DNA from: Epiperipatus broadwayi
Lineage: Eukaryota > Animalia > Onychophora
DNA length: 64,000 nt
Assembly (NCBI GenBank): GCA_028023455.1
Contig: JAQFVV010000008.1
Coordinates: 17,546,001 to 17,610,000 of the forward strand
Direction: 5' to 3'
In this document: piece by piece, positions 1,868-45,203 of the stretch
How the letters are laid out: the number at the start of each line of letters is the position of its first letter
How positions within the stretch are numbered: the first letter of the stretch is position 1
Position numbers and translations under genes: made by a program
Notes under the pieces: generated by a model
Told to the model about the DNA's origin: nothing
What the model saw: only the letters and a program-made list of their open reading frames with translations
Database searches by the model: none

Positions 1868-2057
1868 AATCAATGAATTGTAGATTGAAATGTATACTAG
1901 GTGTTATATCCACCAGTTATAATACTCACTGGTGAACAATCTATGCAGTAAGCTAATCCTTGCCCTGACTATATATGCATACAATAATTTATAATCACAA
2001 AGACTAACACAGGTAGAATAAGAAAAACAGATTTAATTATAATACACTAATATATAC

Positions 2058-5000
2058 TATAACAGATGGAAAGATTCCCACTTAGATATATTGATCAGAT
2101 TCAACAATCAGCTGGTTCGATCAGAATGTATGACCAACTTACACAAAGTATTTATGTGATGATACACCTATCTATCAAGCCCCAAACGTTGCTGGTGCCA
2201 GATATAACAGATGGAACAATGACCACTAGCCCCAAAAGTTGATGATGCCAGATATAATGGACAGAATGATCACAACTAATCCCAAACATTGCTAACACCA
2301 GTATAATGGGCAGTACTCTTCATCAAGAGTCATAACTACCAAGCCCAATGATGGTGCACCAGATGAAATGGATGGTCAACTAACTTGCAGACTGTACTAC
2401 TATGCAGATGTAGCAATATGGTGTGGGATAAGTTAATATGCTCTAATTTATTACCCCTAATGAAACATTCTGCAGAGACCTACCAGGCTTAGAAGGGAAA
2501 AAATTGTGTCCAACTATGTTCAGACTGTGGATCATCTGATAGAGTGCTAATGAGAACCCGATGAAATGCTTAACCAATGATTGCATACTCTTTAATTGAC
2601 TAACTCTATCCCTATTTAATAATATTAAATGCAATTTAGGTTAGTTCATCCACTTTTCCCCCTTTTAAATTCCATTATGCCCTAATATTCAAGCCCAGAG
2701 AGAATATTGCTTTTATCTCCTTTAGCAGATATGAACAGGTACACAGCAACACCTGCACCTATATATAGGTTACAACTAGCATTTATTATATTTGTTTTAT
2801 TTTCAAGCTTTTATATGATAAGAAAAATAGATGTGTATGCATGCCTAAATTGTTTATAGACTGTGGAATGTCAGGACAACTCAATAAACCAGAGACCGGA
2901 ATAATACAAACTCTCAAACATTTATTAACAATAATAAATATCAAGTATAACAACAATAGAAATGATAAAAAAATATAAAAAATAATAATAATCATATGTA
3001 CATGTGTCACATGTGAACCTCTACCATTTTACTAATTAATGATTATTATAATCCAACCCTTATACCCCATGGTAGACATCCACCTATGTCACTCATTCTC
3101 TATAAATCATAATTATATAGAAAAATAAACTTTCGTTATTTAATATAATTGAGATGCTGGCTAACTAAATTATATATTTGCAGATGTTAACAACCTATTT
3201 AACAAGTTTCCCCAATTTATATATATGATAGAGACAGATACTAGTTGATTAGTCAAACATACTGGAAAATATATGTACATGGTTAATCACAAAATAAAAC
3301 ATATAATATGTATTCTGTATAAGTGTTGTAATTTAACCTATGAAAATAAATTTAGAGAATCTTACCTCAATATTTATGTGGATAACCTGAAGTGAAGTAG
3401 GTGGGTTAACCCAAATTTTATTTACAATGAAAATAGAAAAATATCAAAGTGAATAATCCCCCCTTTCTTCTTTGCTAATTCTCAAAAAAATGAGGCTTCA
3501 GCATCAGAGTGTGAAAATACAACAGATAACATGAATAACAAAATAATAATAAACAAACAAAAATTTACAATATTGATTCTTTGATTAAAAATTGTAATTG
3601 GAACAAAGTTCATAAAAATCATCATAATAGAAGTAGTAGTAGTTGATAGTTAGGCAAGTTGTTCTTCAAAGCAGTTTCACTTAGTAAATTATTTTCCTTA
3701 GCAAAGATAGATAGGTACAATGGTGTCTCCTGTAATTGTGTTTAATGGTAAACACCTTGATCCTCATTTGATTCACCATAAAGTATTCCAATCCTTGTTT
3801 ACTTTGGACTGCAGACATCTTCTTGTGTGTTTACAATAAAGTAGAAAAATATATATAGATATATAGAGGTTTAATGCAGCTGGTAGGAAATACCATGACA
3901 CACAATAGCATGTTTTGCTCTAGCCCATCTTCATATTAAAGTACAATTTAATAATTATTTGTAATCATAAATTTATATCAGATAATAGAGAAGCGCTTTA
4001 TATATACATTAAGAAAATTATTTCATTTTTTTTTCTTTTCCAATTTTCAGCAGACTTAATTTTCGTTAATCTTTTTGAAAAAATTTAAATAGTAAAAAAA
4101 AATTACTCCAGCAACTTTTAAAACACGATTTAATTATTTAAGATTTTATCACTTACTTTTTATTTTACTTCCTTTCCTCTGAATTTGGTAAACTTTTAAT
4201 TACAGCATTTGACTTTTAAAAATGTTTATAATTTAAATAAAAGAAAAAGCAAAACTCCATATTAGTGTTCTAAATTTTACTTTAAACTACTGTCTATTGT
4301 TGTAGCTGCTATCTCTTTTGATAAGAAGAAAGATTTGTAAAAAGTTTTTGTTTTTATATAAAATGCTGAGAATGTTGATATTTTAAACTGCCTTTTTGTT
4401 TAAATTCATTTAGATTTTTATATGTATTGTTTAAATACATTTCATTTATTACAAATAAAAAATAAAATAAAATCAGTTTTATTTTCACACATGCCCACCA
4501 CAACTTAACTTCAGGCCATCCCAAATTCATTTAACTATAAATTAATATTAAATTTTAAATTAAAAAAAACATATATATATATACATTACAGTTTATTTAA
4601 TCAAATAGTTTTATATATATATACAATATTACTTTGTAAAATACTGATCATATTTTATTTTATAATAAAATAATCTATTGTGCATTATATGTATATATGC
4701 AATAAATAACAAACAAATAATCTTCCCATTATTAATATAAAATTCCAAATGGATTGGGTTCAATAACTAGGCTTGATCTTGTTAGGCATGTGTGCATTTT
4801 AAGCTACCCTTTACAACCCCATCTCCTCACAGGGTTAGAATTTTAATCTGTCATGAAAATTTTAACACTTACACAAGGTTTGCATTTGAAGTTTGATGGG
4901 TTTTTTTTCTTTTTTAACAAATATAAGAAGGGTAGTGAAACCTTATTTTACTGTTTTCTACACTCAACTACACAAATTGCTTTCTATTCTTTCCTAATCA

Positions 5001-8000
5001 CTCTCATGAAATACTTTTCAAGGTGGGTTCAAACATAGGTTGTTTTTTTAAACTAATGATGGTTATGTTTTGAGTACACTAATAAAAATGTGTTTCTGTT
5101 TCAGGTAGCACATATTTTTTTCTTGTTATCCTCTATTCTGCTCCTATTGAGTATTATTGGATTTCCTTTGAGGACTAACAGAAGATTGGAGCAACCATCA
5201 CTTAGTGTGGTTTAACTCTTTTAAATAAAGTGGCCCTAAAGTATTCTAATATTTGCTTTGGCATCCATTAGGGAATACTCTCATCATAATTTTTAACCTA
5301 ACATCATAATATCTATTTTTTTTACTTATCAACATTCATTTTTTTTCCACACATCAGTTGAGTATGGCAATTCTACAATTAGTAAGATTGTCCATAATAT
5401 GGTTTCATAATTTGGATATTATATGTGCCCCTAACTTGTTCTTCCATATCCAAGCAAAATTCATTAGGACTCGATTGTTTAACTATTGTGTAAGGTCCTT
5501 CATATAGATGGTAAAACTTACTGTACTTATTTTCAATTTGCTTACTAACATGAGGTTTTTTTTTATTAAAACTTGATCTCCTACTTTGAAAGTATATGGA
5601 GTTCCAATCTTATTTTTGTTCCTTTTATTGGCCTTACTTACCAATCAAAGATAGGCTTTCTGCACATTTTCCTCCATTTGTTTATATCTAGTCATAGGTT
5701 ATTTAGTGAACAACATGGGAATTGATTGATTAAAATGTAGTTCAATGGGTGTGAATCCTGTGGATTCATTCACTCTCCAGTTGATATAATTAACTATCTA
5801 GTCTATGTCTTACCCACCCTCTATGCTCATCCTTTAGGTAAGTCCGGAATAAACGACCGAGCTCCTGCATTACACGTTTGCAAGGGTTTGACTGTGGATT
5901 CCTAATGGATGTGAGCACATGTTTTATTTGTGATCTTTCCACCCATTTTTTTTTATTCTTTGGATAGAAAAGGGGTACCATGGTCTGTTAAAATGGTTTT
6001 GGGTTTTCCTATCCTCACAAATTGGAGGGTATCTAATACCTTGATGGTATATCTGGTATTAGCTTGGGGTATTGGATAAGCAGAAACATATTTAATAAAG
6101 AGATCATAAGTGACCAATAGATATTTTTGTTTATTAAATGGGGGTAAGGGCCCATAATAATCGATTGCCAAGATCTCATTTGGTGCTTTAGGTAATATTG
6201 ATTTTGCAGCATTATAGTAATTTTGATTTACTGGCTTGGCTTGAAGGCACACTAAACAATCTTGAAGTGATCTTAATATGTCTTTATACATACCAGGCCA
6301 GCAAAACCAATTTCTCAAAGTATGCTCTGTTTTATGGGCATCGTAGTGTCCATATAAACAATGAATATATTTTATGAGTGGGATATGCAATGTTTCTGGT
6401 ATTACTACCCTCCACTCATCTGTAATATTATTTACTTTATATAGCAGGACCTCATTTTCTATCTTATAAAAATCCAAGATCTTTTGGCACATTCAAAACT
6501 TTCTCTCCTTTCAAAGCTCTCATGATTAAGTTTAAATTATTATGATTAAGTTGCAATTCAGGCAGGTTTTCCAAATCGTTCTCTACATTACCATCAGTCA
6601 TCATATTGACATTTGTAATATAGGCATTCTCTACTGATAAATGGCTCTGTTCTGATCCACATGGGTTTCGACTTAGCACATTGGCCACAACATTCTCGGA
6701 TCCCTTGCAATACTGCATGGTGTAATTAAATTCCTGCAATAGCAACCTCCATCTAACTAGATGGCTGTTGGTCAGATAACAGTGGTTTGGGAATTTGAGG
6801 CTTTTGTGATCTGTGACACTATCACCAAGAAGCATCTGTCGAAACTTTTGGAAGGCCCACACTCTTGCCAGTGCTTCCTTCTCTGTTACTGTATAATTTA
6901 GTTCTGGACCTTTCAGGAGTTGGCTGATAAAGTAGAGAACCCCAGGTTGGCCATCCTCCTGGATTTGGGATAATGTTACCACCAATCCAAAACCACTACT
7001 ATCTGTCTGGACTATAAATGGTTTATTAAAATCAGGGAAGGCTAACATGATTTGCTCTAAAAACCCTGTTTTAATTTTCTCAAATGCCTGATCCTGCTCC
7101 TCAGTCCATTTCCATCTCTCGTCTTTCCTGATTAATTTTAATAATGGTTCTGTGTGGTCAGAGAATTTTTGATAGAAACGATGGTAAAAGTTACATAGGC
7201 CTAAAAATGATCACATTTGTTTTTATTAGTCAGTTTAGGAAAGTTCTGAATGGCACTGATCTTGTCTGGATGAGGTCTTATCCCATCACAACCTACGATA
7301 TGACCTAAGAAGATAACCTGGTTTGAGACTAGGGTACACTTCTTGAAGTTGATCTTGATGCCTTTCTGGAAGTACTCCTGGAAAAACATAGTCAGGTGTT
7401 GAAAATGCTTTTCAACAGTGGTAGATGCGACAATCACATCATCCACATATATCATAATGATCTGCTTCACCTCAGGAGATAAGGTCTGATCTAAACATCA
7501 TATAAAAACAGCACCACTATTTACCAATCCAAATGGCATCCTATTAAATTGGTATGTATACCCCTCGTATCAGAAAGCAGTGTATTGGCGATCATTTGGA
7601 TGGAGTTCGATCTGCCAATAACTAGAGGTTAGATCGAAAGTGGAAAACACCTTCTTGTTTCCAAATCTCACGAATAATTCATGTATGGGCAGTAGAATAT
7701 TTTTGTCTGAAATAGTAATTTTGTTTAATTGTCTAGCATCCAAACAAAATCTCATCGACCCATCTTTCTTCTTCACAGTTACGACTGGATTACACCTATG
7801 GTGAAGAGCATTTGGAAATGATCCCCCAATCTAGCATTTTGTTAATTTGTTTGGTTATGACTGTTGATGAAGAGTACTGCCCATTATACTGGTGTTAGCA
7901 ATGTTTGGGATTAGTTGTAATCATTCCGTCCATTATATCTGGCATCATCAACTTTTTGGGCTAGTGGTCATCATTCCATCCATTATATCTGGCACCAGCA

Positions 8001-8130
8001 ACGTTTGGGGCTCAATAGATAGATGTATCATCACATAAATAGTTTGCGTAAGTTGGTCATACATTGTGATCAAACCAGCTGATTGTTGAATCTGATCAAT
8101 ATATCCAAGTGAATCGTTCTGTCCGTTATA
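2058..8130 (-). mobile_element. Element with Gypsy pol (RT-RH-IN) bounded by ~278-bp terminal inverted repeats, 4-bp TSD ATAC
   Basis: 2058-2336 is the reverse complement of 7854-8130 (about 20 differences, many at CpG). ATAC is duplicated at 2054-2057 and 8131-8134, and removing the insert restores the LTR sequence seen uninterrupted at ~12.86 kb. Confidence 0.88.
5400..7853 (-). pseudogene. Degenerate Gypsy pol: RT (7180-7853), RNase H (6464-7048), integrase (~5400-6492)
   Basis: ORF fragments with RFCLDARQLN, FDLTSSYWQI, YVDD, VQTDSSGFG/TEKEALA/TDHKSL, HxxxGH...CxxC, TDHGTPF and PQSNPC. Multiple frameshifts and stops. No gag or protease upstream. Confidence 0.92.
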
Positions 8131-8793
8131 ATACATATTTACACTAATACATTAAAACAATCATAATCTATTTATTAACAAACCCGAAGGTAAAACAAAA
8201 TAATAATGAAGATCTATGCGAACTACTTTATAGTCCCTATGCTGACTCTTGGACATTCGGTGGCCAGCTGTCCACTCTGGGGCTACCATGCTAAATAAGC
8301 AATGTTCAGCCCCTTTCCCAGTTCATCTGCATCGGTAGAGTTCCCAGTTTTTAGTGTCCAAATGCTTTACACTTTCACTCATTTTTTCAGTCCTGATTTT
8401 CTGGATTTGATTGGTCAGATCTTGTCCATCTTAGTCGGATCAATCCCTCCCAATTTATCTTTTGGCTTAAGTTTTACTTTGATTGATTACCCTTTGCAGT
8501 TCAATTGCTTTTTAATTAATCATCTTGTTTATCTGCAAAGTTCCTTCGTTAATTAACCTTGCTATCTAAAAGGATTTGTTTACAGGTTGTTTTAAAACAT
8601 AACACAACTATTAAAGTATAATATTATTTTAAATCCCTATTTACAACATTTACTATTATTATTTTGTGTGTATGTGTATTTTAATTATACACATACATAA
8701 CAATTCCTCCCCCAAGTTCAAAGATTATTTGTTAGTCTTCGAACTTAAAATATAGTCATTTAAATATTTGGGAGGGTTTATTTTCCTTTTTAA

Positions 8794-11700
8794 TCATTGC
8801 CGTGAATTATTTTCCATTTGTAGTGGTGACTTCTCTGTAGGCAAAATGTTTAATTGAAAATCAGTTTCTTCACTGGAGCAAATTTCCGGTTTATTATCAT
8901 TTTTTAGAGTCTTGTCGGTTTCTTTTATGCCGAGATTTAGAATCCAGTCGTCACTTTCATTTCTCCATAGCTGGTTCACATGTTTTTTTAATATCTTACC
9001 ATCGCCCATGTGAACTATCACGACTTCTTTTGACAGATGGTGAATAACTTCGCCTGGAAACCATTGATTTTTTAGTGTGTTCTTTACCCACACCCTCTCC
9101 TGTGGCTGGAATTTATATGAACAACTCTGTTGTTTGTATCGTTGTTTTGTTGGCACTATTTTTGCAAGTTTTGTTCGCAGTTTTCTGCCTAAATATATTT
9201 CCATCGGTGATTTGCCAGATTTGGCCACTGGGGTAGAATGCTGGTGGAGAAGAGCAGTCAATAGAGCTTCATCGATTTTCATTTCACCCATTTTTTTATA
9301 GCTGACTTGAGGCTTTGCACTGCTCTTTCAGCCAGTCCATTTGATTGGGGATGGTATGAAAGGAGGTGAGTACATGTTTTGTTCCCCAATCTTGAATTGC
9401 CCCTGCAAACTTTTCTGATGTGAAACTTGTTCGATTATCTGAGACTAAAGTTTCTGGGAATCCGTGATGAGCAAAAATCTTGTACAGAGTGCTAACTGTT
9501 ACCTCTGTGCTGGTATTTTTCACTATTTTATACTCATCCCATCCTGAATACAAGTTGACTACAACTAGAAATAAATGGCCTTTGAATGGACCACAGTGGT
9601 CTATATGGATTCATTGCCATGGGTTATCTGCTTTTGGCCATGTTTCAAAAGTCGATGGGGTTGCTTTAGTGCACTGTTGGCAGTTCTCACATTTCTTTAC
9701 ATATCTTTCTATATCTACATTGATGTTTGGCCACCATATGACGCTACAAGCTAAGGCTTTTGCCCTCACAATGCCCGGATGTTCCTCATGAAGCAAGTTT
9801 AATATTTGTTGTCTGCCCACCACAGGTATCAGCACTTGGTCACTCCTCAAAATGCATCCTTTACATATGGATAGCTGTTAGCAGGCATTCCATAATTGTT
9901 TGTGAAGAAAACTTGGATGTTTGTTTGGCCATCCTCCTCTTATCTTATGTATGATCCACTGATAGCTGTCATCTTCTTCTGTCCATCAAGCTACAATTTT
10001 GCTATTTAGGTTTTGCTTTTGAAGTACATCTATATAATTTATTTCTCTTTCTAATACTGGTGCTTCATCAAGATTGGGAATGCGTGATAATGCATCTGTG
10101 TGCCCAATTTGTTTTCCCTTTTTGTATTGCAGACTGTAATCATAGCCTGCAAGAACATTAAGCCAACATAACATTTGGGGGCTTAAATAATCAGGTGTAT
10201 GTTTATTTTCGAATATTTCCAGCAGTGGTTTGTGATCAGTTATAATAGTAAATTTCCTCCCATATAGATATTGGTGGAATTTTTTCACTCCGAACAAAAT
10301 TGCGAGCGCTTCCTTGTCCAATTGGCTATAGTTTTTTTCTGCCTTGGACAATGTGCATGAAGCATATGCTATAGGTCGCTCTTCTGACTGGGCTGGGTGA
10401 CTTAGTACTGCCCCGACTCCAAATTCAGATGTGTCGGTGGTCAACATAATTTCCAGATCACTGTTATAATGTACTAATAATTTCTCTGAAGTAAGCAGTG
10501 CTTTAGTGTGAATAAATGCTGTTTTTTCTTGCTTGTCCCATTTCCATTTCTGGTTTTTCCTCAGTAGATTATATAAAGAAGTGGCCACATGGGCTTTTTT
10601 TTTAAAAAAAAGTTTCTAAAAAATTCACCAAGCCTAGGAAAACTTGTAGTTGCTTCATGTTTGTGGGTCTTGGTGCTTCTGCTATTGATTTAGCCTTTTC
10701 AGGGGAATGGGATGTGGCACTTTTCGATATAATGAGGCACAGGAATTTAATGTCCTTAGTTTTCCAAATGCATTTTTCAGTATTCAGCTTTGCGCCAAAC
10801 TCATTTAGCCATTCACATATCTTATCTACTTCGTTTCTAAGTTCTTTGTCTGTGGTTGCTGTTACAAGGATGTCATCAAAATATGGTATGACTCCATCTA
10901 ATCCATTGAGGAGAGTTTCGATTTTCGACTGAAATATACTAGGGGCCGATGTTATTCCACATGGTAGTCTTTTACATTTGTATAGCCCAAGATGCATAGT
11001 AATTGTCAGTATTCTGGAAGCTTCCTCTGTAACTTGTATTTGATGGAATGCAGCGTTAAAGACTAACTTCACAAAGAAATTGGATTTCTGCAAAGAAGCG
11101 ATAACTTCTCTAGCGTTTGGTACAGGGTATGCACTCTTGTTTAATGCTTTATTTACAGTTACCCTGTAATCCCCACACAAGCATATCTGACCATTAGGTT
11201 TACTTATGATTACTACTGGGGTGGCCCAATTTGACTTTTCCATGGGTTTCAACACCCCTTTCTTGATGAGATTGTCTATTTCTTTTTCTACTTTTACTTT
11301 CTGAGCAAACGGTACCTTTCTAGGTTTGCAAATTATGGGTAGAGCTGACATGTTCATTTCTAACAATACTGGCTCAGTTTTAATAATTCCCGGCTCCCCA
11401 TTAAATAAATTTGGAAATTTATTTTCCATTTTTTTTTCCAACTCGACATTTTGTATGAATGTCAATCTAATCCCTAATTTATTAAACCACTCATGGCTGA
11501 TTAATGGATTTATCAGGGCATGCACTATATATAACGGTAAATTGACAATTTTACCCTCTACTCTATTTACTGGAGTTTTAACCATGCCCTTTATTTTAAT
11601 AGCATTGACATTTATGTCTAACGCTTTCATGTCAGTTTTTACTATTTCGGGTGTTTGCTTACAATTTTTTGTAATGGTCTGCCAATTGTGTAGTGAAATT

Positions 11701-12618
11701 AGGGTTATATCGCTCCCACTGTCCATTTCCATGTCTATAGGGTGATCGTATATTTTAACTTTTATAATTATTTTCTCATTAAGACTGGTTGCTGTAAACT
11801 GTTTTTCTTTTTCCCTGTAATTTATGGTTAGGACTGTTTCTTGTGTGTAGTGTTTCATTTTGTTCTCTCCAACCCATGTTTTGCCTATTACATAATTTAC
11901 ATTGTTTGCATCTAAAATAGAAATTAGTGATTTTATGCTCTTTTTTTCCACAACAAAAACAGATAACAGGATTTCTACTATTACTGCCATTACTTTCATT
12001 ATTTTTTGTGGATTTCTGTTCCACTATTTTGAAAGTTTTGTAAACTTTGGTCTGCTTGAAATTTCCCCCATTATTGAATTCTGTGAATTTTTTGGACTGT
12101 TCCAAGATGAGCTCATAGGCTTTACTACGTTTGATTGTCTCTGTGTAATCGAGATTTGTTACGGACAGTAGCTGTTGTCATAAGATGTCACTGTTTATGC
12201 CTGTCAGGAACTGTTCAAGGAGAGCTTTGTCTAAGTAAGAACCATACATGCAGTCTTTAGCTAACACTCGCAGTACACAATCAAAATCCTTAATCATTTC
12301 ATTTCTAGCTTGCAGATGATGGCGGAACTGTAGTCTAGCAATGTGGTGCGAAGGAGTGGGGTTAAAATAATTACCCAATTGCTCTATGAAATCACTGTAT
12401 GAGCATTGCTCAGGGGTTAAAGGCGCTACTAACCGATTTGCGATTTCTATAACCGCTTTACCCGTGAAACATAATACAATGGCTATTTTATATTTATTGT
12501 CTTCGACTCTATTAATAAAAAGATGCTTTTCTATGTGTTCAACATACAACAGCCAACTGCTCATCTCGTTTATGTCGAATTCGCCAATGGCCTTATGCAA
12601 TTTATCCATTATACCCAA
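8794..12618 (-). pseudogene. Degenerate gag-pol of the Mag-like element (gag 12105-12618, zinc knuckle ~11.9 kb, PR, RT, RH, IN)
   Basis: ORFs with CFCCGKKEHK knuckle, MDSGSDIT (protease), YFDDIL (RT), TDTSEFGVGAV/SQLDKEALAI (RH), HEEHPG...CENCQQ and VSDNRTSF (IN). Confidence 0.93.
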
Positions 12619-13220
12619 ATATTGTACTTAAAAAAATTTCTTTGTGTAAGTGGTGAATAACAGCAATTTTAATACACACTACTCTAGCTTTATTAGGTTC
12701 GAATTCTTGACTGTGCCAAATGTTATATCCGCCAGTTATAATACTCACTGGTGAACAATCTATGCAGTAAGCTAACCCTTGCCCTGACTATATATGCATA
12801 CAATAATTTATAATCACAAAGACTAACACAGGTAGAATAAGAAAAACAGATTTAATTATAATACACTAATATATACATATTTACACTAATACATTAAAAC
12901 AATTGTAATCTATTTATTAACAAACCTGAAGGTATACCAAAATAATAATGAAGATCTGTGTGACCTAATTTATAGTCCCTATGCTGACTCTTGGATGTTC
13001 AGAGGCCAACTGTCCACTCTGGGGCTACCGTGCTAAATAAGCAATGTTCAGCACCTTTCCCAGTTCATCTGCATCAGTAGAGCTCCCAGTTTTTAATGTC
13101 CAAATGCTTTACACTTTCACTCATTTTTCCAGTCCTGATTTTCTGGATTTGATTGGTCAGATCTTGTCTGTCCTGGTAGGATCAATCCCTCCCAGTTTAT
13201 CTTTTGGCTTAAATTTTACT

Positions 13221-13613
13221 TTGATTGATTACCCTTTGAAGTTCATTGGTTTTTAATTAATCACCTTGTTTATCTGCAAAGTTCCTTCGTTAATTAACCT
13301 TGCTATCTAAAAGAATTTGTTTACATGTTGTTTTAGAGCATAACACAACAATTAAAGTATAATATTATTTTAAATTAACAAAGTATTTTTATCTTCACGT
13401 ATATATTGAACCGGATTTGATTGATTACCCTTTGAAGTTCATTGGTTTTTAATTAATCACCTTGTTTATCTGCAAAGTTCCTTCATTAATTAATCTTGCT
13501 ATCTAAAAGAATTTGTTTACATGTTGTTTTAGAGCATAACACAACAATTAAAGTATAATATTATTTTAAATTAACAAAGTATTTTTATCTTCACGTATAT
13601 ATTGAACCGGATT
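13221..13613. repeat. 196-bp tandem duplication spanning the LTR/insert junction
   Basis: ttgattgattaccc...gaaccggatt is repeated with period 196. Each copy contains ~155 nt of LTR plus ~41 nt of the adjacent insert. Confidence 0.9.
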
Positions 13614-15582
13614 GATATTCGATTCAATGGTTTTATTACTAATGTTAATTTTTTTTTATTATTATTTAAAACACATACACATTTATATTTAAAATAAATC
13701 ATTTTACTGTTTATAGAATTGATTTTAAAATAATTTACTTTCACAGCTTTCTTTTAATCCATTTAATTAAAAAACAAGCAAACATGTGATTATATTCCTG
13801 TCTCTTAATTTTATCAATTCTAAAAGTGGATATTTAATTTTGTGTTATTTTAGTTACAATAATCCCTGGTTGGAATTCTTAAATTGGATTGAGCAGAAAA
13901 TTAATATTTGTCTTGCCTGAGGCATAGAATTTGACAATAAGGAAAGTTTTTCATGGGAAATGTAGCGAAGTAAATATAGCCTGCCAAGAAAGAAGGAGGT
14001 TGCTTTTTTTTAGCTAGACTAACAGGCTGTTTAAAAGGCTTGGTTCAGCTGCTGAGTAGGAAAAGGCATTCTGATGAATCTGTAGAACTTCGTATTAATC
14101 GCAGTTTGAACATTTAAGAGATTTTTGAAATTTGCCTTCATGATGTCAACAAACGCTGCCATATGTATTGGAATCCATAAGATGTATTGCTAATTCAAAT
14201 AAAGATGAGCCTCAGGCTCTAAGCTGTTCTTTTGTGATGTCATAAAACTCTAACCTAAGCTGGATCCCCAATTTGCCTCAACACTTGCCTTTGTCATAAA
14301 GAGAAGTCGCCTGAAAGATGAACTATTATTAAAAGTGCACACTCGTCAGAAAATTACTAGAACTCTGCCTTATTGTAAGATAAACTTTTTCTTATTCTAA
14401 CCAGGGTAAATAAATTGCATTTAATTAAACCTCTGCTCAATCTAATGATAATTGTGTTATAAAGTTGTATTAATTATTTTAAGTATTTATTATCTATATT
14501 TACTTTTTCTAGTATTTAAAGTGTGTCTTGGAATCTTAGTTTTAAGATTCCAAGTTGTTTTCATTTATCAGGGGGTGAATTGGAAGATTGTATTTTATAT
14601 GTTTAATATACGCCCAATTATTTCATTAACTATTGCAAAATGCTTTGGCAGTTTTCATAATTTTTATTTACTCACCGGCCCTTAGTTGTTGTTATAAAAT
14701 AATGAAATTTTAAACGTTTGGTTTGCGCTTTTTGCAAACAACAAAATCTTTTTGCTGGCTATTTGTCAAGTTATTTCTTTGGGTTGTCTGAAAGTAGTCA
14801 TTTCTTTCTGTATTACGTAAGATCGTGATCAAATATCTTTTTGTTGCCTTGTATGTGAAATCAACCACACTTGCTTTAAATGTAGTATTACATGCAGCAG
14901 TCCTGTGGTGTTGTAATGTCAGTAGGTAGAATGCTACTGATCGATCATCTGCGCTGGTTTCGTTGATTTCCTACAAGGTTGTAATTGTTTTCATATCGCT
15001 GATTCAGGAAGCTAGAGTTGCTGTTTTTTTGTAATTTTATAAATTGCCAGCAGGAAGATATTATCTTACCCATTTCTTATATTTTTAGGTGAGAGAATTT
15101 TGCTGCCAAAATGTTTAATGCCTTCATGTTTGCCATACTCTTGTGCACTCTCTGATAAATATGCGTATGTTAATATAAGTCACTTTTGTATTCATGACTA
15201 GATTTCTTTACTCTATTGTCCAATTTTTAATAAAATTATCAAATTGTTTACATTTATTTGGCTGACATTTGTCTTGGTACTTTTATTTCTCAATTGTCTA
15301 AACAATCCATAAGATCTCTTGTTTATCCGAGTTTAGTTCGGTGCATTTCAGTTCGCATATCCTGTCCACCCTTAAAATAAATGTCTAGTGATGTGATGGG
15401 ATGTATTTGGCTTCTCCTTAAATGAAGTCAATAATATCTCGGCAATTATGCCCAGATAAACCTGTTAGCCATAGTTCCGATTTTCAGACCATATGCGAAT
15501 ATAAAAAGCTTTCGTCCATTATAATACATATAACTTACGTATGTATATTGCGATAAATTATACACACACATACGTTTAAATA
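13572..15582 (-). mobile_element. ~2-kb decayed insertion in the 5' LTR (possibly LINE-derived), TTAAAT duplicated
   Basis: The LTR resumes at 15589. ttaaat is present on both sides (13370-13375 / 13566-13571 and 15583-15588). Contains a LINE 3'-tail match at ~15390-15475 and weak LINE-ORF2-like residues on the minus strand. Confidence 0.45.
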
Positions 15583-44356: not shown

Positions 44357-45203
44357 TAATAAACTAAAGATCAGCATTTCAAGCTAATGTACATGTGCTT
44401 TTTTATGAATGTTAATAATAAATGAATATTTTCATTTCCAACATAAAATAAAGTCTTTGCGAAAGAATAGAATGAATCCATCTATTCTTTCAACCCAAAT
44501 GCTTAAATATGGGCAAATCTTAAGCACTGGAAATGAAAGCATGAAGATAAACCAATCACTTTAAATTACTCTTTACCATGTCTGAATAAATGACGCCTAT
44601 GAAATTTTCTAGAATTTACGACACGTCATTCTTAAATGAAACTAAACATATGTAAATGAGATATTTATTTATATAGCGCGAGGTATATAAATTGTAATAA
44701 ACTAAAGATCAGCATTTCAAGCTAATGTACATGTGCTTTTTTATGAATGTTAATAATAAATGAATACTTTCATTTCCAACACAAGATAAAGTCTTTGTGA
44801 AAGAATAGAATGAATCCACCTATTCTTTCAACCCAAATGCTTATATAAATAAATATCTCATTTACATATGTTTAGTTTCATTTAAGAATGACGTGTCGTA
44901 AATTCTAGAAAATTTTGTAGGTGTCATTCATTCAGACATGGTAAAGAGTAATTTAAAGTGATTGGTTTATCTTCACACTTTCATTTCCAGTGCTTAAGAT
45001 TTGCCCATACTTAAGCATTTGGGTTGAAAGAATAGGTGGATTCATTCTATTCTTTCGCAAAGACTTTATCTTGTGTTGGAAATGAAAGTATTCATTTATT
45101 ATTAACATTCATAAAAAAGTGCATGTACATTAGCTTGAAATGCTGATCTTTAGTTTATTACAATTTATATACATTGCACTATATAAATAAATATCTCATT
45201 TAC
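44357..45203. mobile_element. Fold-back element built from the ~340-bp unit; copy 2
   Basis: Full unit 44357-~44695, then ~150 nt of a second unit, then an inverted arm to ~45203. Flanked by ttactttggagttta (44344-44358) and ttactttggaattta (45200-45214). Confidence 0.82.

Follow-up and report, generated by a model that had tools for sequence, protein, structure and literature searches.

The window analysed here is a 64,000-nt stretch of Epiperipatus broadwayi (Onychophora) DNA (GCA_028023455.1, JAQFVV010000008.1, positions 17,546,001-17,610,000, forward strand), in which an element at 2058-8130 interrupts an LTR of another Gypsy-type element. The structure of 2058-8130 was read from the assembly and from its internal consistency. 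Domains were called with Pfam profiles on ORF fragments of the element's minus strand, and genome-wide searches covered the whole 5.6-Gb assembly. Read-level material consisted of four DNA runs from one sample in the form of Logan contigs, which were matched to the window at 98% likeness. The locus comprises the following features.

1902-2057, no strand assigned: left piece of the host LTR (another Gypsy-type element)
2054-2057, no strand assigned: left copy of the target site duplication (TSD), ATAC, present once in uninterrupted paralogous host LTRs
2058-4815, minus strand: complete 3' LTR of 2,758 bp, 5'-TGTAAAGG...CCATCTGTTATA-3' in sense orientation, with its U5 terminus at 2058
2058-2336, minus strand: left arm (haplotype A, GATTCCCACTTAGAT), the 279 bp at the U5 terminus of the 3' LTR
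2178-2327, minus strand: set of three 50-bp tandem units within U5, with its mirror image in the right arm at about 7863-8012
4816-4829, minus strand: polypurine tract (PPT) GAGGAGATGGGG, immediately upstream of the 3' LTR
4830-5482, minus strand: stretch between integrase remnant and PPT, collinear with the family (11 pol-family loci aligned)
5483-6492, minus strand: integrase remnant, three ORF fragments in differing frames (Pfam Integrase_H2C2, rve)
5483-5644, minus strand: C-terminal part of the integrase
5790-5981, minus strand: continuation of the integrase core
5953-6492, minus strand: H2C2 zinc finger and rve core
6464-7048, minus strand: RNase H domain, 194-aa ORF fragment (RT_RNaseH, 2.8e-25)
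7201-7776, minus strand: reverse transcriptase (RT) domain, two ORF fragments at 7570-7776 and 7201-7470 (RVT_1 profile positions 2-94 and 148-205)
7854-7858, minus strand: junction microhomology ATAAC, common to the family's pol and LTR
7854-8130, plus strand: inverted cap (haplotype B, GATTCACTTGGAT), 277 bp from the U5 terminus of a family LTR
8131-8134, no strand assigned: right copy of the TSD, ATAC, in the window sequence
8135-8634, no strand assigned: right piece of the host LTR (another Gypsy-type element)
12721-13375, no strand assigned: second host LTR, uninterrupted, serving as empty-site reference

Removal of 2058-8134 joined 1902-2057 and 8135-8634 to a sequence of 656 nt that aligned without gaps to the second host LTR (94.2%), and the restored site (...ACACTAATATATAC/ATATTTACAC...) matched that LTR exactly. 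At least 10 host-LTR paralogues at other genomic loci had the flanks contiguous with a single ATAC, as reflected by coordinates overlapping by 4 bp. Loose ends of Logan unitigs at 8131 also matched empty-site paralogues. The exact empty site with its single ATAC shows that the element entered the host LTR in one insertion event with an integrase-type staggered cut; the length of the ATAC duplication equals the 4-bp TSD length of the element's family, as seen in the normal copy L032.

The inverted arms at 2058-2336 and 7854-8130 measure 279 and 277 nt, respectively, with 257 of 279 alignment columns identical (92.1%), and both start at their outer end with TATAAC. A repeat search revealed an ungapped core of 258 nt (2079-2336 and 7854-8111; 94% complementary), which is extended to the termini 2058 and 8130 by one 2-bp indel. 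In a preliminary description of this DNA, inverted repeats of ~278 bp with 92-93% identity and a TATAAC start, an ATAC duplication and restoration of the host LTR upon removal of the insert had been reported, with all of which the present measurements agree.

Comparison with the normal copy L032 revealed that 2058-4815 aligns over its full length to the LTR at 62-2818 of that copy (94.3%). Given that 2058-4815 is a complete LTR of 2,758 bp, the left arm makes up just the last 10% of it, that is, the U5 end. Likewise, all of 29 other U5-end loci were found to run on into the 2,758-bp LTR. No long inverted repeat was found within the LTR, and in L031 and L032 the start of the LTR did not match the arm in reverse orientation. 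The initial statement that a direct LTR pair is lacking holds insofar as only the 3' LTR is present, but the complete LTR at 2058-4815 had been overlooked.

In the interior of the element, Pfam analysis revealed the pol order RT - RNase H - DDE integrase to be kept on the minus strand, without a gag or protease match on the minus-strand ORF fragments, which are the same domains as had been recognised originally. There was also no Pfam match to a tyrosine recombinase in the element, an rve integrase being present instead. A homologous-protein search with the RNase H fragment returned one match, at 42% identity. The pol remnant is interrupted by many stops and frameshifts; the element at 2058-8130 is a dead copy that stands alone.

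On sequence grounds, the element belongs to a large, high-copy Ty3/Gypsy family, whose ordinary members number in the thousands. A normal copy is ~12 kb long and has direct LTRs of 2.76 kb with TG...TA termini, a primer binding site (PBS), a PPT and a 4-bp TSD. In L032, direct LTRs at 62-2818 and 5952-9424 (97% identical) occur together with the TSD CTAT, the PBS TCTGGCGTGCAACGTGG and the PPT AAGGAGAGGGGG. Genome searches gave at least 1,544 candidate matches for the arm and, at a first look, over 6,000 for pol; a 52-mer of the U5 terminus matched 309 times, and 9 of the 10 close U5 pairs among the matches listed were direct. The window copy was collinear with all 11 fetched pol-family loci from 4376-4611 to 7858, beyond which these loci run on into putative protease and gag; ORFs upstream of the junction in L047 gave weak matches to RVP (0.0015) and Retrotrans_gag (0.0079), neither of which reaches the curated Pfam cut-off. 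The integrase region showed 90-95% DNA identity to, and collinearity with, ordinary LTR-bearing family copies. As targets, the family prefers AT-rich sites of the (AT)n type, such as ATAT and ATAC. Locus L056, where an inverted LTR piece seemed to break off at nearly the same LTR position, was rejected, since it proved to hold a copy from a related subfamily nested into an (AT)n site.

At the other end of the element, family homology stops a little upstream of the RT domain, at 7858; the inverted LTR end begins at 7854 and has its outward-facing terminus at 8130. When 19 family copies were set beside the LTR and the window, the shared ATAAC was found to be perfect over its 5 nt, with 11 of 13 nt matching when CAAGAG is counted. 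The junction of RT and inverted U5 occurs a single time in the 5.6-Gb assembly. The two arms differ by a linked 2-bp indel and a non-CpG A/G change, both of which segregate in the family (about 19 versus 12 of 34 copies). Since the arms differ by segregating family polymorphisms, they would derive from two source copies; later gene conversion could be an alternative source of the haplotype difference.

These features are best explained by one aberrant product of reverse transcription or integration with two U5 ends, which we consider probable. In place of its front part (5' LTR, PBS, gag and protease), the element has the inverted 277-bp U5 end of a family LTR, and with this cap both outer termini are U5 ends. 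In a single event, the family integrase would have joined both U5 termini to the target and produced the usual 4-bp duplication. As the LTR has a short terminal inverted repeat of its own (TGTAAAGG / TATAATGG, 6 of 8 positions matching), its U5 end should be a substrate near-equivalent to the U3 end. Of the possibilities raised at the outset, we favour that of an aberrant cDNA that carried one LTR end twice and was integrated nonetheless.

We infer the molecular route, and the 277 nt may correspond to R plus U5. On the likeliest route, the growing minus-strand DNA would have halted just upstream of the RT domain, and its 3' end would have annealed via ATAAC to minus-sense R-U5 DNA made from a second co-packaged genomic RNA, for which spare minus-strand strong-stop DNA is a natural candidate. 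Copying of this R-U5 DNA as far as the tRNA-defined end would leave a linear DNA duplex that has a proper U5 terminus on either side. In a near-equivalent variant, the integrase complex would have paired U5 ends from two separate cDNA molecules, whose inner ends were finally united by the host through microhomology-mediated end joining. It is possible, if doubtful, that the cap represents the complete minus-strand strong-stop DNA (R plus U5) of the second co-packaged RNA and started the plus strand, in which case the copy would be a fossil of U5/U5 integration in vivo by a Gypsy integrase. Inspection by eye of the LTR ~30 nt upstream of the inner end of the cap revealed neither a convincing TATA box nor a convincing initiator. 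Two RNAs are co-packaged per particle of this kind, and each can yield strong-stop DNA (PMC6894440). Rearranged proviruses arising through reverse-transcription errors are known from HIV-1, including inversions and asymmetric LTRs (PMC9278108). In the open-access literature, no description of a U5/U5 or inverted-LTR Gypsy integrant was found, with papers on DIRS elements at most.

Differing arm haplotypes would also be expected from two elements, that is, if two insertions of the same family in opposite orientation at the same 4-bp target had been followed by a deletion of 15-18 kb through illegitimate recombination at ATAAC, spanning from the RT of the first element to the last 277 bp of the second. 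Microhomology deletions are frequent in LTR-rich genomes, and the preference of the family for (AT)n-type targets raises the chance of a repeated hit. However, the second insertion would have had to hit exactly the same site and leave just two ATAC copies, with the middle TSD copy and either missing 5' LTR gone without trace, and three events would be needed instead of one. The paralogous host LTRs found by both flank searches were all uninterrupted at this position and thus gave no sign of a hot spot; on balance, we consider a double insertion unlikely. The junction microhomology would equally suit an in-place rearrangement of a normal element, in which an MMBIR-type template switch or fold-back repair copied the element's own 3' U5 over its 5' part, and the short terminal inverted repeat of the LTR could have served a second switch at the outer boundary. 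Such a second switch must fall exactly on the boundary between element and TSD, however, and a cap copied from the element itself should share its own U5 haplotype, whereas the arms differ, so that we judge this rearrangement quite improbable.

Concerning the assembly itself, a misjoin or chimeric read could have created the inverted 277 bp, given the highly repetitive surroundings, the single occurrence of the junction in the assembly and the absence of a bridge across 7854-7858 among the matching Logan unitigs listed, which are 60-170 nt long. Against this very improbable artefact it speaks that a misjoin would not stop at a U5 terminus that is followed by a matching TSD and then by the exact host LTR, and that assemblers rely on long overlaps and not on 5 nt. 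Long inverted ends, a 4-bp TSD and an internal integrase gene are also what would be seen in a cut-and-paste family bounded by terminal inverted repeats (TIRs) with a Gypsy-type, Ginger-like integrase, or in a TIR transposon with captured Gypsy pol. We give these two readings hardly any credence: the left arm lies inside a complete LTR with a PPT, RT and RNase H are retained while the integrase is fragmented, and the target is ATAC and not CCGG/CCGT. Moreover, with the junction unique in 5.6 Gb, the repeat occurs elsewhere as an ordinary LTR end, as evident from the 29 other loci and from the predominance of direct pairs among the matches listed, which is the pattern that the preliminary description had linked to a one-off insertion as opposed to a family. 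Its headline of an intermediate between LTR retrotransposons and Ginger-like transposons is not borne out, and neither are its proposals of a captured pol and of a cut-and-paste family, in view of the arms, which are U5 ends from a Gypsy LTR of normal build and 2.76 kb in length, and of the unique junction, the broken pol and the collinear ordinary copies. Target-primed insertion of LINE or Penelope type is excluded by the complete U3-R-U5 3' LTR, together with the precise U5 termini and the chromosomal 4-bp TSD, and autointegration was rejected for the same features.

Compared with Ty3/Gypsy elements (Metaviridae), the order RT - RNase H - integrase, the H2C2 and rve integrase and the TGTNR-type LTR start are the same, and the family likewise has direct LTRs, a tRNA-type PBS, a PPT and a 4-bp TSD, although its LTR ends in TA in place of the usual CA. 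The window copy differs in having an inverted U5 end instead of 5' LTR, PBS, gag and protease. LINE-1 twin priming is a target-primed reverse transcription of RNA that gives a poly(A) tail and variable TSDs. Its inversions resemble the window element in 5' truncation, an inverted 5' segment, origin in one event and microhomology at the internal junction; the window element has, in contrast, integrase-substrate ends, a complete U3-R-U5 LTR and a 4-bp TSD, and its inverted part is a U5 terminus, whereas that of LINE-1 stems from the RNA body. The rearranged HIV-1 proviruses (PMC9278108) are also integrated template-switch products from particles with two RNA genomes, but keep one U3 and one U5 end, compared to two U5 ends here. 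DIRS elements are retroelements with inverted terminal repeats, too, but rely on a tyrosine recombinase and insert without a TSD, in contrast to the DDE integrase and 4-bp TSD of the window element.

Ginger1 has long inverted ends of 40-270 bp, a Gypsy-type integrase, 4-bp TSDs and a CCGG/CCGT target, and its TIRs were hypothesised by Bao et al. (2010) to originate from oppositely oriented LTRs around an integrase (PMC2836005). Both Ginger1 and Ginger2/Tdd share with the window element the Gypsy-type integrase, long inverted ends, a 4-bp TSD and Gypsy-like termini; they form TIR-sharing families without RT and RNase H, whereas the window element is a lone copy with both enzymes. Its structure resembles the hypothetical precursor of Bao et al. 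(PMC2836005), who reached the layout of an integrase between inverted repeats solely by assuming two separate elements.

The element is not a new kind of transposon but probably a copying accident, which removes a false lead towards a class standing midway from LTR elements to Ginger. What remains is a rare natural integrant with two U5 ends, a microhomology junction and arms apparently from two templates. If it arose in one event, the family integrase would accept a symmetric end pair in vivo, and a single reverse-transcription error could set an integrase gene between long inverted repeats. Should such integrants recur in the genome, reverse-transcription errors would provide a one-step source of the structure from which Ginger-type transposons have been proposed to arise. 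Being dead and alone of its kind, the element is without functional consequence and has its value as a mechanistic fossil; it also calls for caution in annotation pipelines that call TIR elements.

Within the U5 of the 3' LTR, each of the three 50-bp tandem units at 2178-2327 was found to be a degenerate U5 end followed by the start of the PBS, with GCCAGA/TATAAC comparing with the true junction of LTR end and PBS.

A repeat search of the window revealed an inverted repeat of 258 nt with 94% identity (2079-2336 and 7854-8111). With one 2-bp indel allowed, the arms extend to 2058 and 8130 (279 versus 277 nt, 257 identical columns, 92.1%); either arm begins with TATAAC, and ATAC lies immediately outside both termini. 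The inverted ends and the ATAC target duplication of the preliminary description were thus confirmed, as was restoration of the host LTR: in silico excision of 2058-8134 joined 1902-2057 and 8135-8634 to 656 nt, which align without gaps at 94.2% identity to the second host LTR (12721-13375), and the resulting site is the same as the corresponding site in that LTR. Genome-wide searches with the two flanks gave matches whose coordinates share exactly 4 bp in 10 or more paralogous host LTRs; therefore, 2058-8130 was inserted in one event with a 4-bp duplication. The host is a different Gypsy-type element on the minus strand (1902-13616), with LTRs of about 656 bp that are 94.2% identical.

Features of the element and the host region
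2058-4815, minus (coding) strand: LTR of the element, 5'-TGTAAAGG...CCATCTGTTATA-3'
9989-10588, minus strand: host RT_RNaseH domain
10605-11999, minus strand: host RVT_1 domain
13220-13611: tandem duplication of a 196-bp unit in the host region

The assembly searched (5.6 Gb, AT-rich, eukaryotic) gave at least 1,544 candidate matches to the 279-bp arm at first look, 40 of which were scored. Comparison with loci having two neighbouring matches revealed the repeat unit to be much longer than the arm. The complete LTR of 2,758 bp aligns end to end to both LTRs of the normal reference copy L032 (62-2818 and 5952-9424, mutually 97% identical; 4-bp TSD CTAT), and the left "TIR" therefore belongs to the element's 3' LTR, whose U5 end it forms. 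A polypurine tract lies upstream of this LTR on the coding strand, and in normal family copies a tRNA-type PBS (TCTGGCGTGCAACGTGG) follows the 5' LTR. The interpretation of the arm as a true TIR was not borne out, since ordinary LTR sequence continues from the U5 end in 29/29 other fetched U5-end loci. A 52-mer from the arm had 309 matches genome-wide; the 100 matches listed include ten close pairs, of which nine are direct and one, the window's own, is inverted.

The family's LTR termini are non-canonical (TG...TA), and its insertions show a strong preference for (AT)n-type targets, with flanks ending in ATAT, ATAC or TTAC, often within ATATATAT runs (window 2058/8130; fetched loci L002-L030; L056 260-290). 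Three 50-bp tandem units lie within U5 (2178-2327, mirrored at 7863-8012), and an additional unit is present in some copies (L014 and L017 examined). Each unit is a degenerate copy of the LTR end together with the initial ~25 nt of the PBS region (GCCAGA-TATAAC...), which suggests earlier duplications spanning the U5/PBS boundary.

Pfam analysis of the element's minus-strand ORF fragments detected RVT_1, RT_RNaseH, Integrase_H2C2 and rve and neither gag nor protease, in agreement with the interior described previously. Read as assembled, without consensus building or frame repair, the pol remnant has at least 40 stops in each frame, with ORF fragments spread over several frames. The pol region gave more than 6,000 candidate matches at first look, scored copies being 88-95% identical. 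All fetched pol copies (11/11) are collinear with the window, starting at 4376-4611 and ending at 7858. Past 7858, family copies enter ORFs whose protease and gag signatures are weak, and a direct-orientation 5' LTR lies another 3.7-3.9 kb upstream (coordinates on C6211, C12487 and C6264), which makes the normal element about 12 kb long. The window copy departs from the family at 7858, ~27 codons ahead of the RT domain, and passes into the inverted U5 end, here called the cap.

At this junction (7854-7858), family copies read ...GGCAAGAG-ATAAC-CAAACAAATT, the LTR counterpart ...ATCAAGAGTC-ATAAC-TACCAAGCC and the window ...ATCAACAGTC-ATAAC-CAAACAAATT, a microhomology of 5 nt (perfect) or 11/13 (imperfect). 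No second copy spanning both sides was found with a junction-spanning query of the assembly, and when the whole assembly was scanned for 47 nt across the junction, allowing 3 mismatches at most, the window was the sole match. With ordinary U5 ends at the other loci fetched, this is the outcome which the preliminary description had held to mark a one-off insertion.

The arms differ by 20 substitutions and the 2-bp indel. Two haplotypes, GATTCCCACTTAGAT and GATTCACTTGGAT, are distinguished by this indel together with a non-CpG A/G change linked to it; both are frequent in the family (about 19 versus 12 of 34 copies). The two host LTRs, an older pair, differ by 5.8%, and the arms by no less (7.2%), consistent with arms that already differed at the time of insertion.

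On either side the element ends exactly at a U5 terminus, and the terminal inverted repeat of the LTR itself (TGTAAAGG / TATAATGG) makes its U3 and U5 ends nearly equivalent. Together with the family-length TSD, these features point to the integrase having joined a linear DNA carrying a U5 end on either side. In the simplest route, the growing minus strand would have switched template at the ATAAC microhomology to minus-sense R-U5 DNA of the second RNA in the same particle; elements of this kind package two RNAs, each open to tRNA priming (PMC6894440). A switch of this kind would account for the exact terminus, set by the tRNA primer, the cap haplotype unlike that of the left arm, the junction microhomology and the missing sequence upstream of RT. 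If 277 nt equals R+U5, the cap would be complete strong-stop DNA. In an equivalent variant, the integrase complex would pair the U5 ends of two cDNAs, and host end joining would seal the inner ends. Similar errors are documented to have produced inversions or asymmetric LTRs in retroviral proviruses (PMC9278108). Target-primed insertion was ruled out, the LTR being complete (U3-R-U5).

Arms of unlike haplotype would likewise result from two insertions at the same site followed by a 15-18-kb deletion; this course is unlikely, since it takes three events, one of them a second hit on exactly the same target, and host-LTR flank searches revealed no hot-spot signs for the site. In-place fold-back repair of a resident element is less probable still, as it would copy the element's own haplotype, whereas those of the arms differ. 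No junction-bridging read was recovered (60-170-nt unitigs), as an assembly error would allow, but such an error would not give a precise terminus, a TSD and continuation into the host LTR, and we regard it as very improbable. The evidence contradicts a mobile TIR family, proposed earlier as a cut-and-paste option: the junction is unique, RT and RNase H are retained, the integrase is broken and the target is AT-rich, which leaves this option hardly any credence.

Ginger1 transposons have TIRs of 40-270 bp, 4-bp TSDs (CCGG/CCGT) and a Gypsy-like integrase without RT, and Bao et al. speculated that their TIRs may stem from two opposed LTRs flanking the integrase, with two elements contributing (PMC2836005). 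The window copy has this geometry and would have acquired it in one step; unlike Ginger1, it contains RT and RNase H, and its target is ATAC. Being a single dead copy, it can serve only as an illustration of a possible route.

A non-autonomous family variant is abundant (L031, G000:C14:6408000-6417999; L032, G000:C4:15116000-15125999), in which PBS through integrase C-terminus (to the equivalent of window 5816) is replaced by region B of 2.1-2.5 kb, comprising 168-bp tandem repeats and two ORFs, one of 147 aa and coiled-coil-like, the other of 257 aa and without Pfam match. This variant seems to account for most of the close LTR pairs among the matches listed (spacing 6.1-6.6 kb). In L031, whose LTR haplotypes differ, PBS and region B recur after the second LTR, so that the locus reads as a tandem LTR-B-LTR-B array. 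A related LTR subfamily with shorter U5 (L056 1-273, G000:C12541:2098070-) lacks the segment with the window copy's junction point, which was lost by deletion between a pair of CTGGTG repeats; this copy lies nested, in opposite orientation, in the U3 of a family member. The window also contains two short fold-back insertions (1101-1879 and 44357-45203) of inverted ~338-nt monomers, with arms of 171-319 nt that are 96-98% identical.
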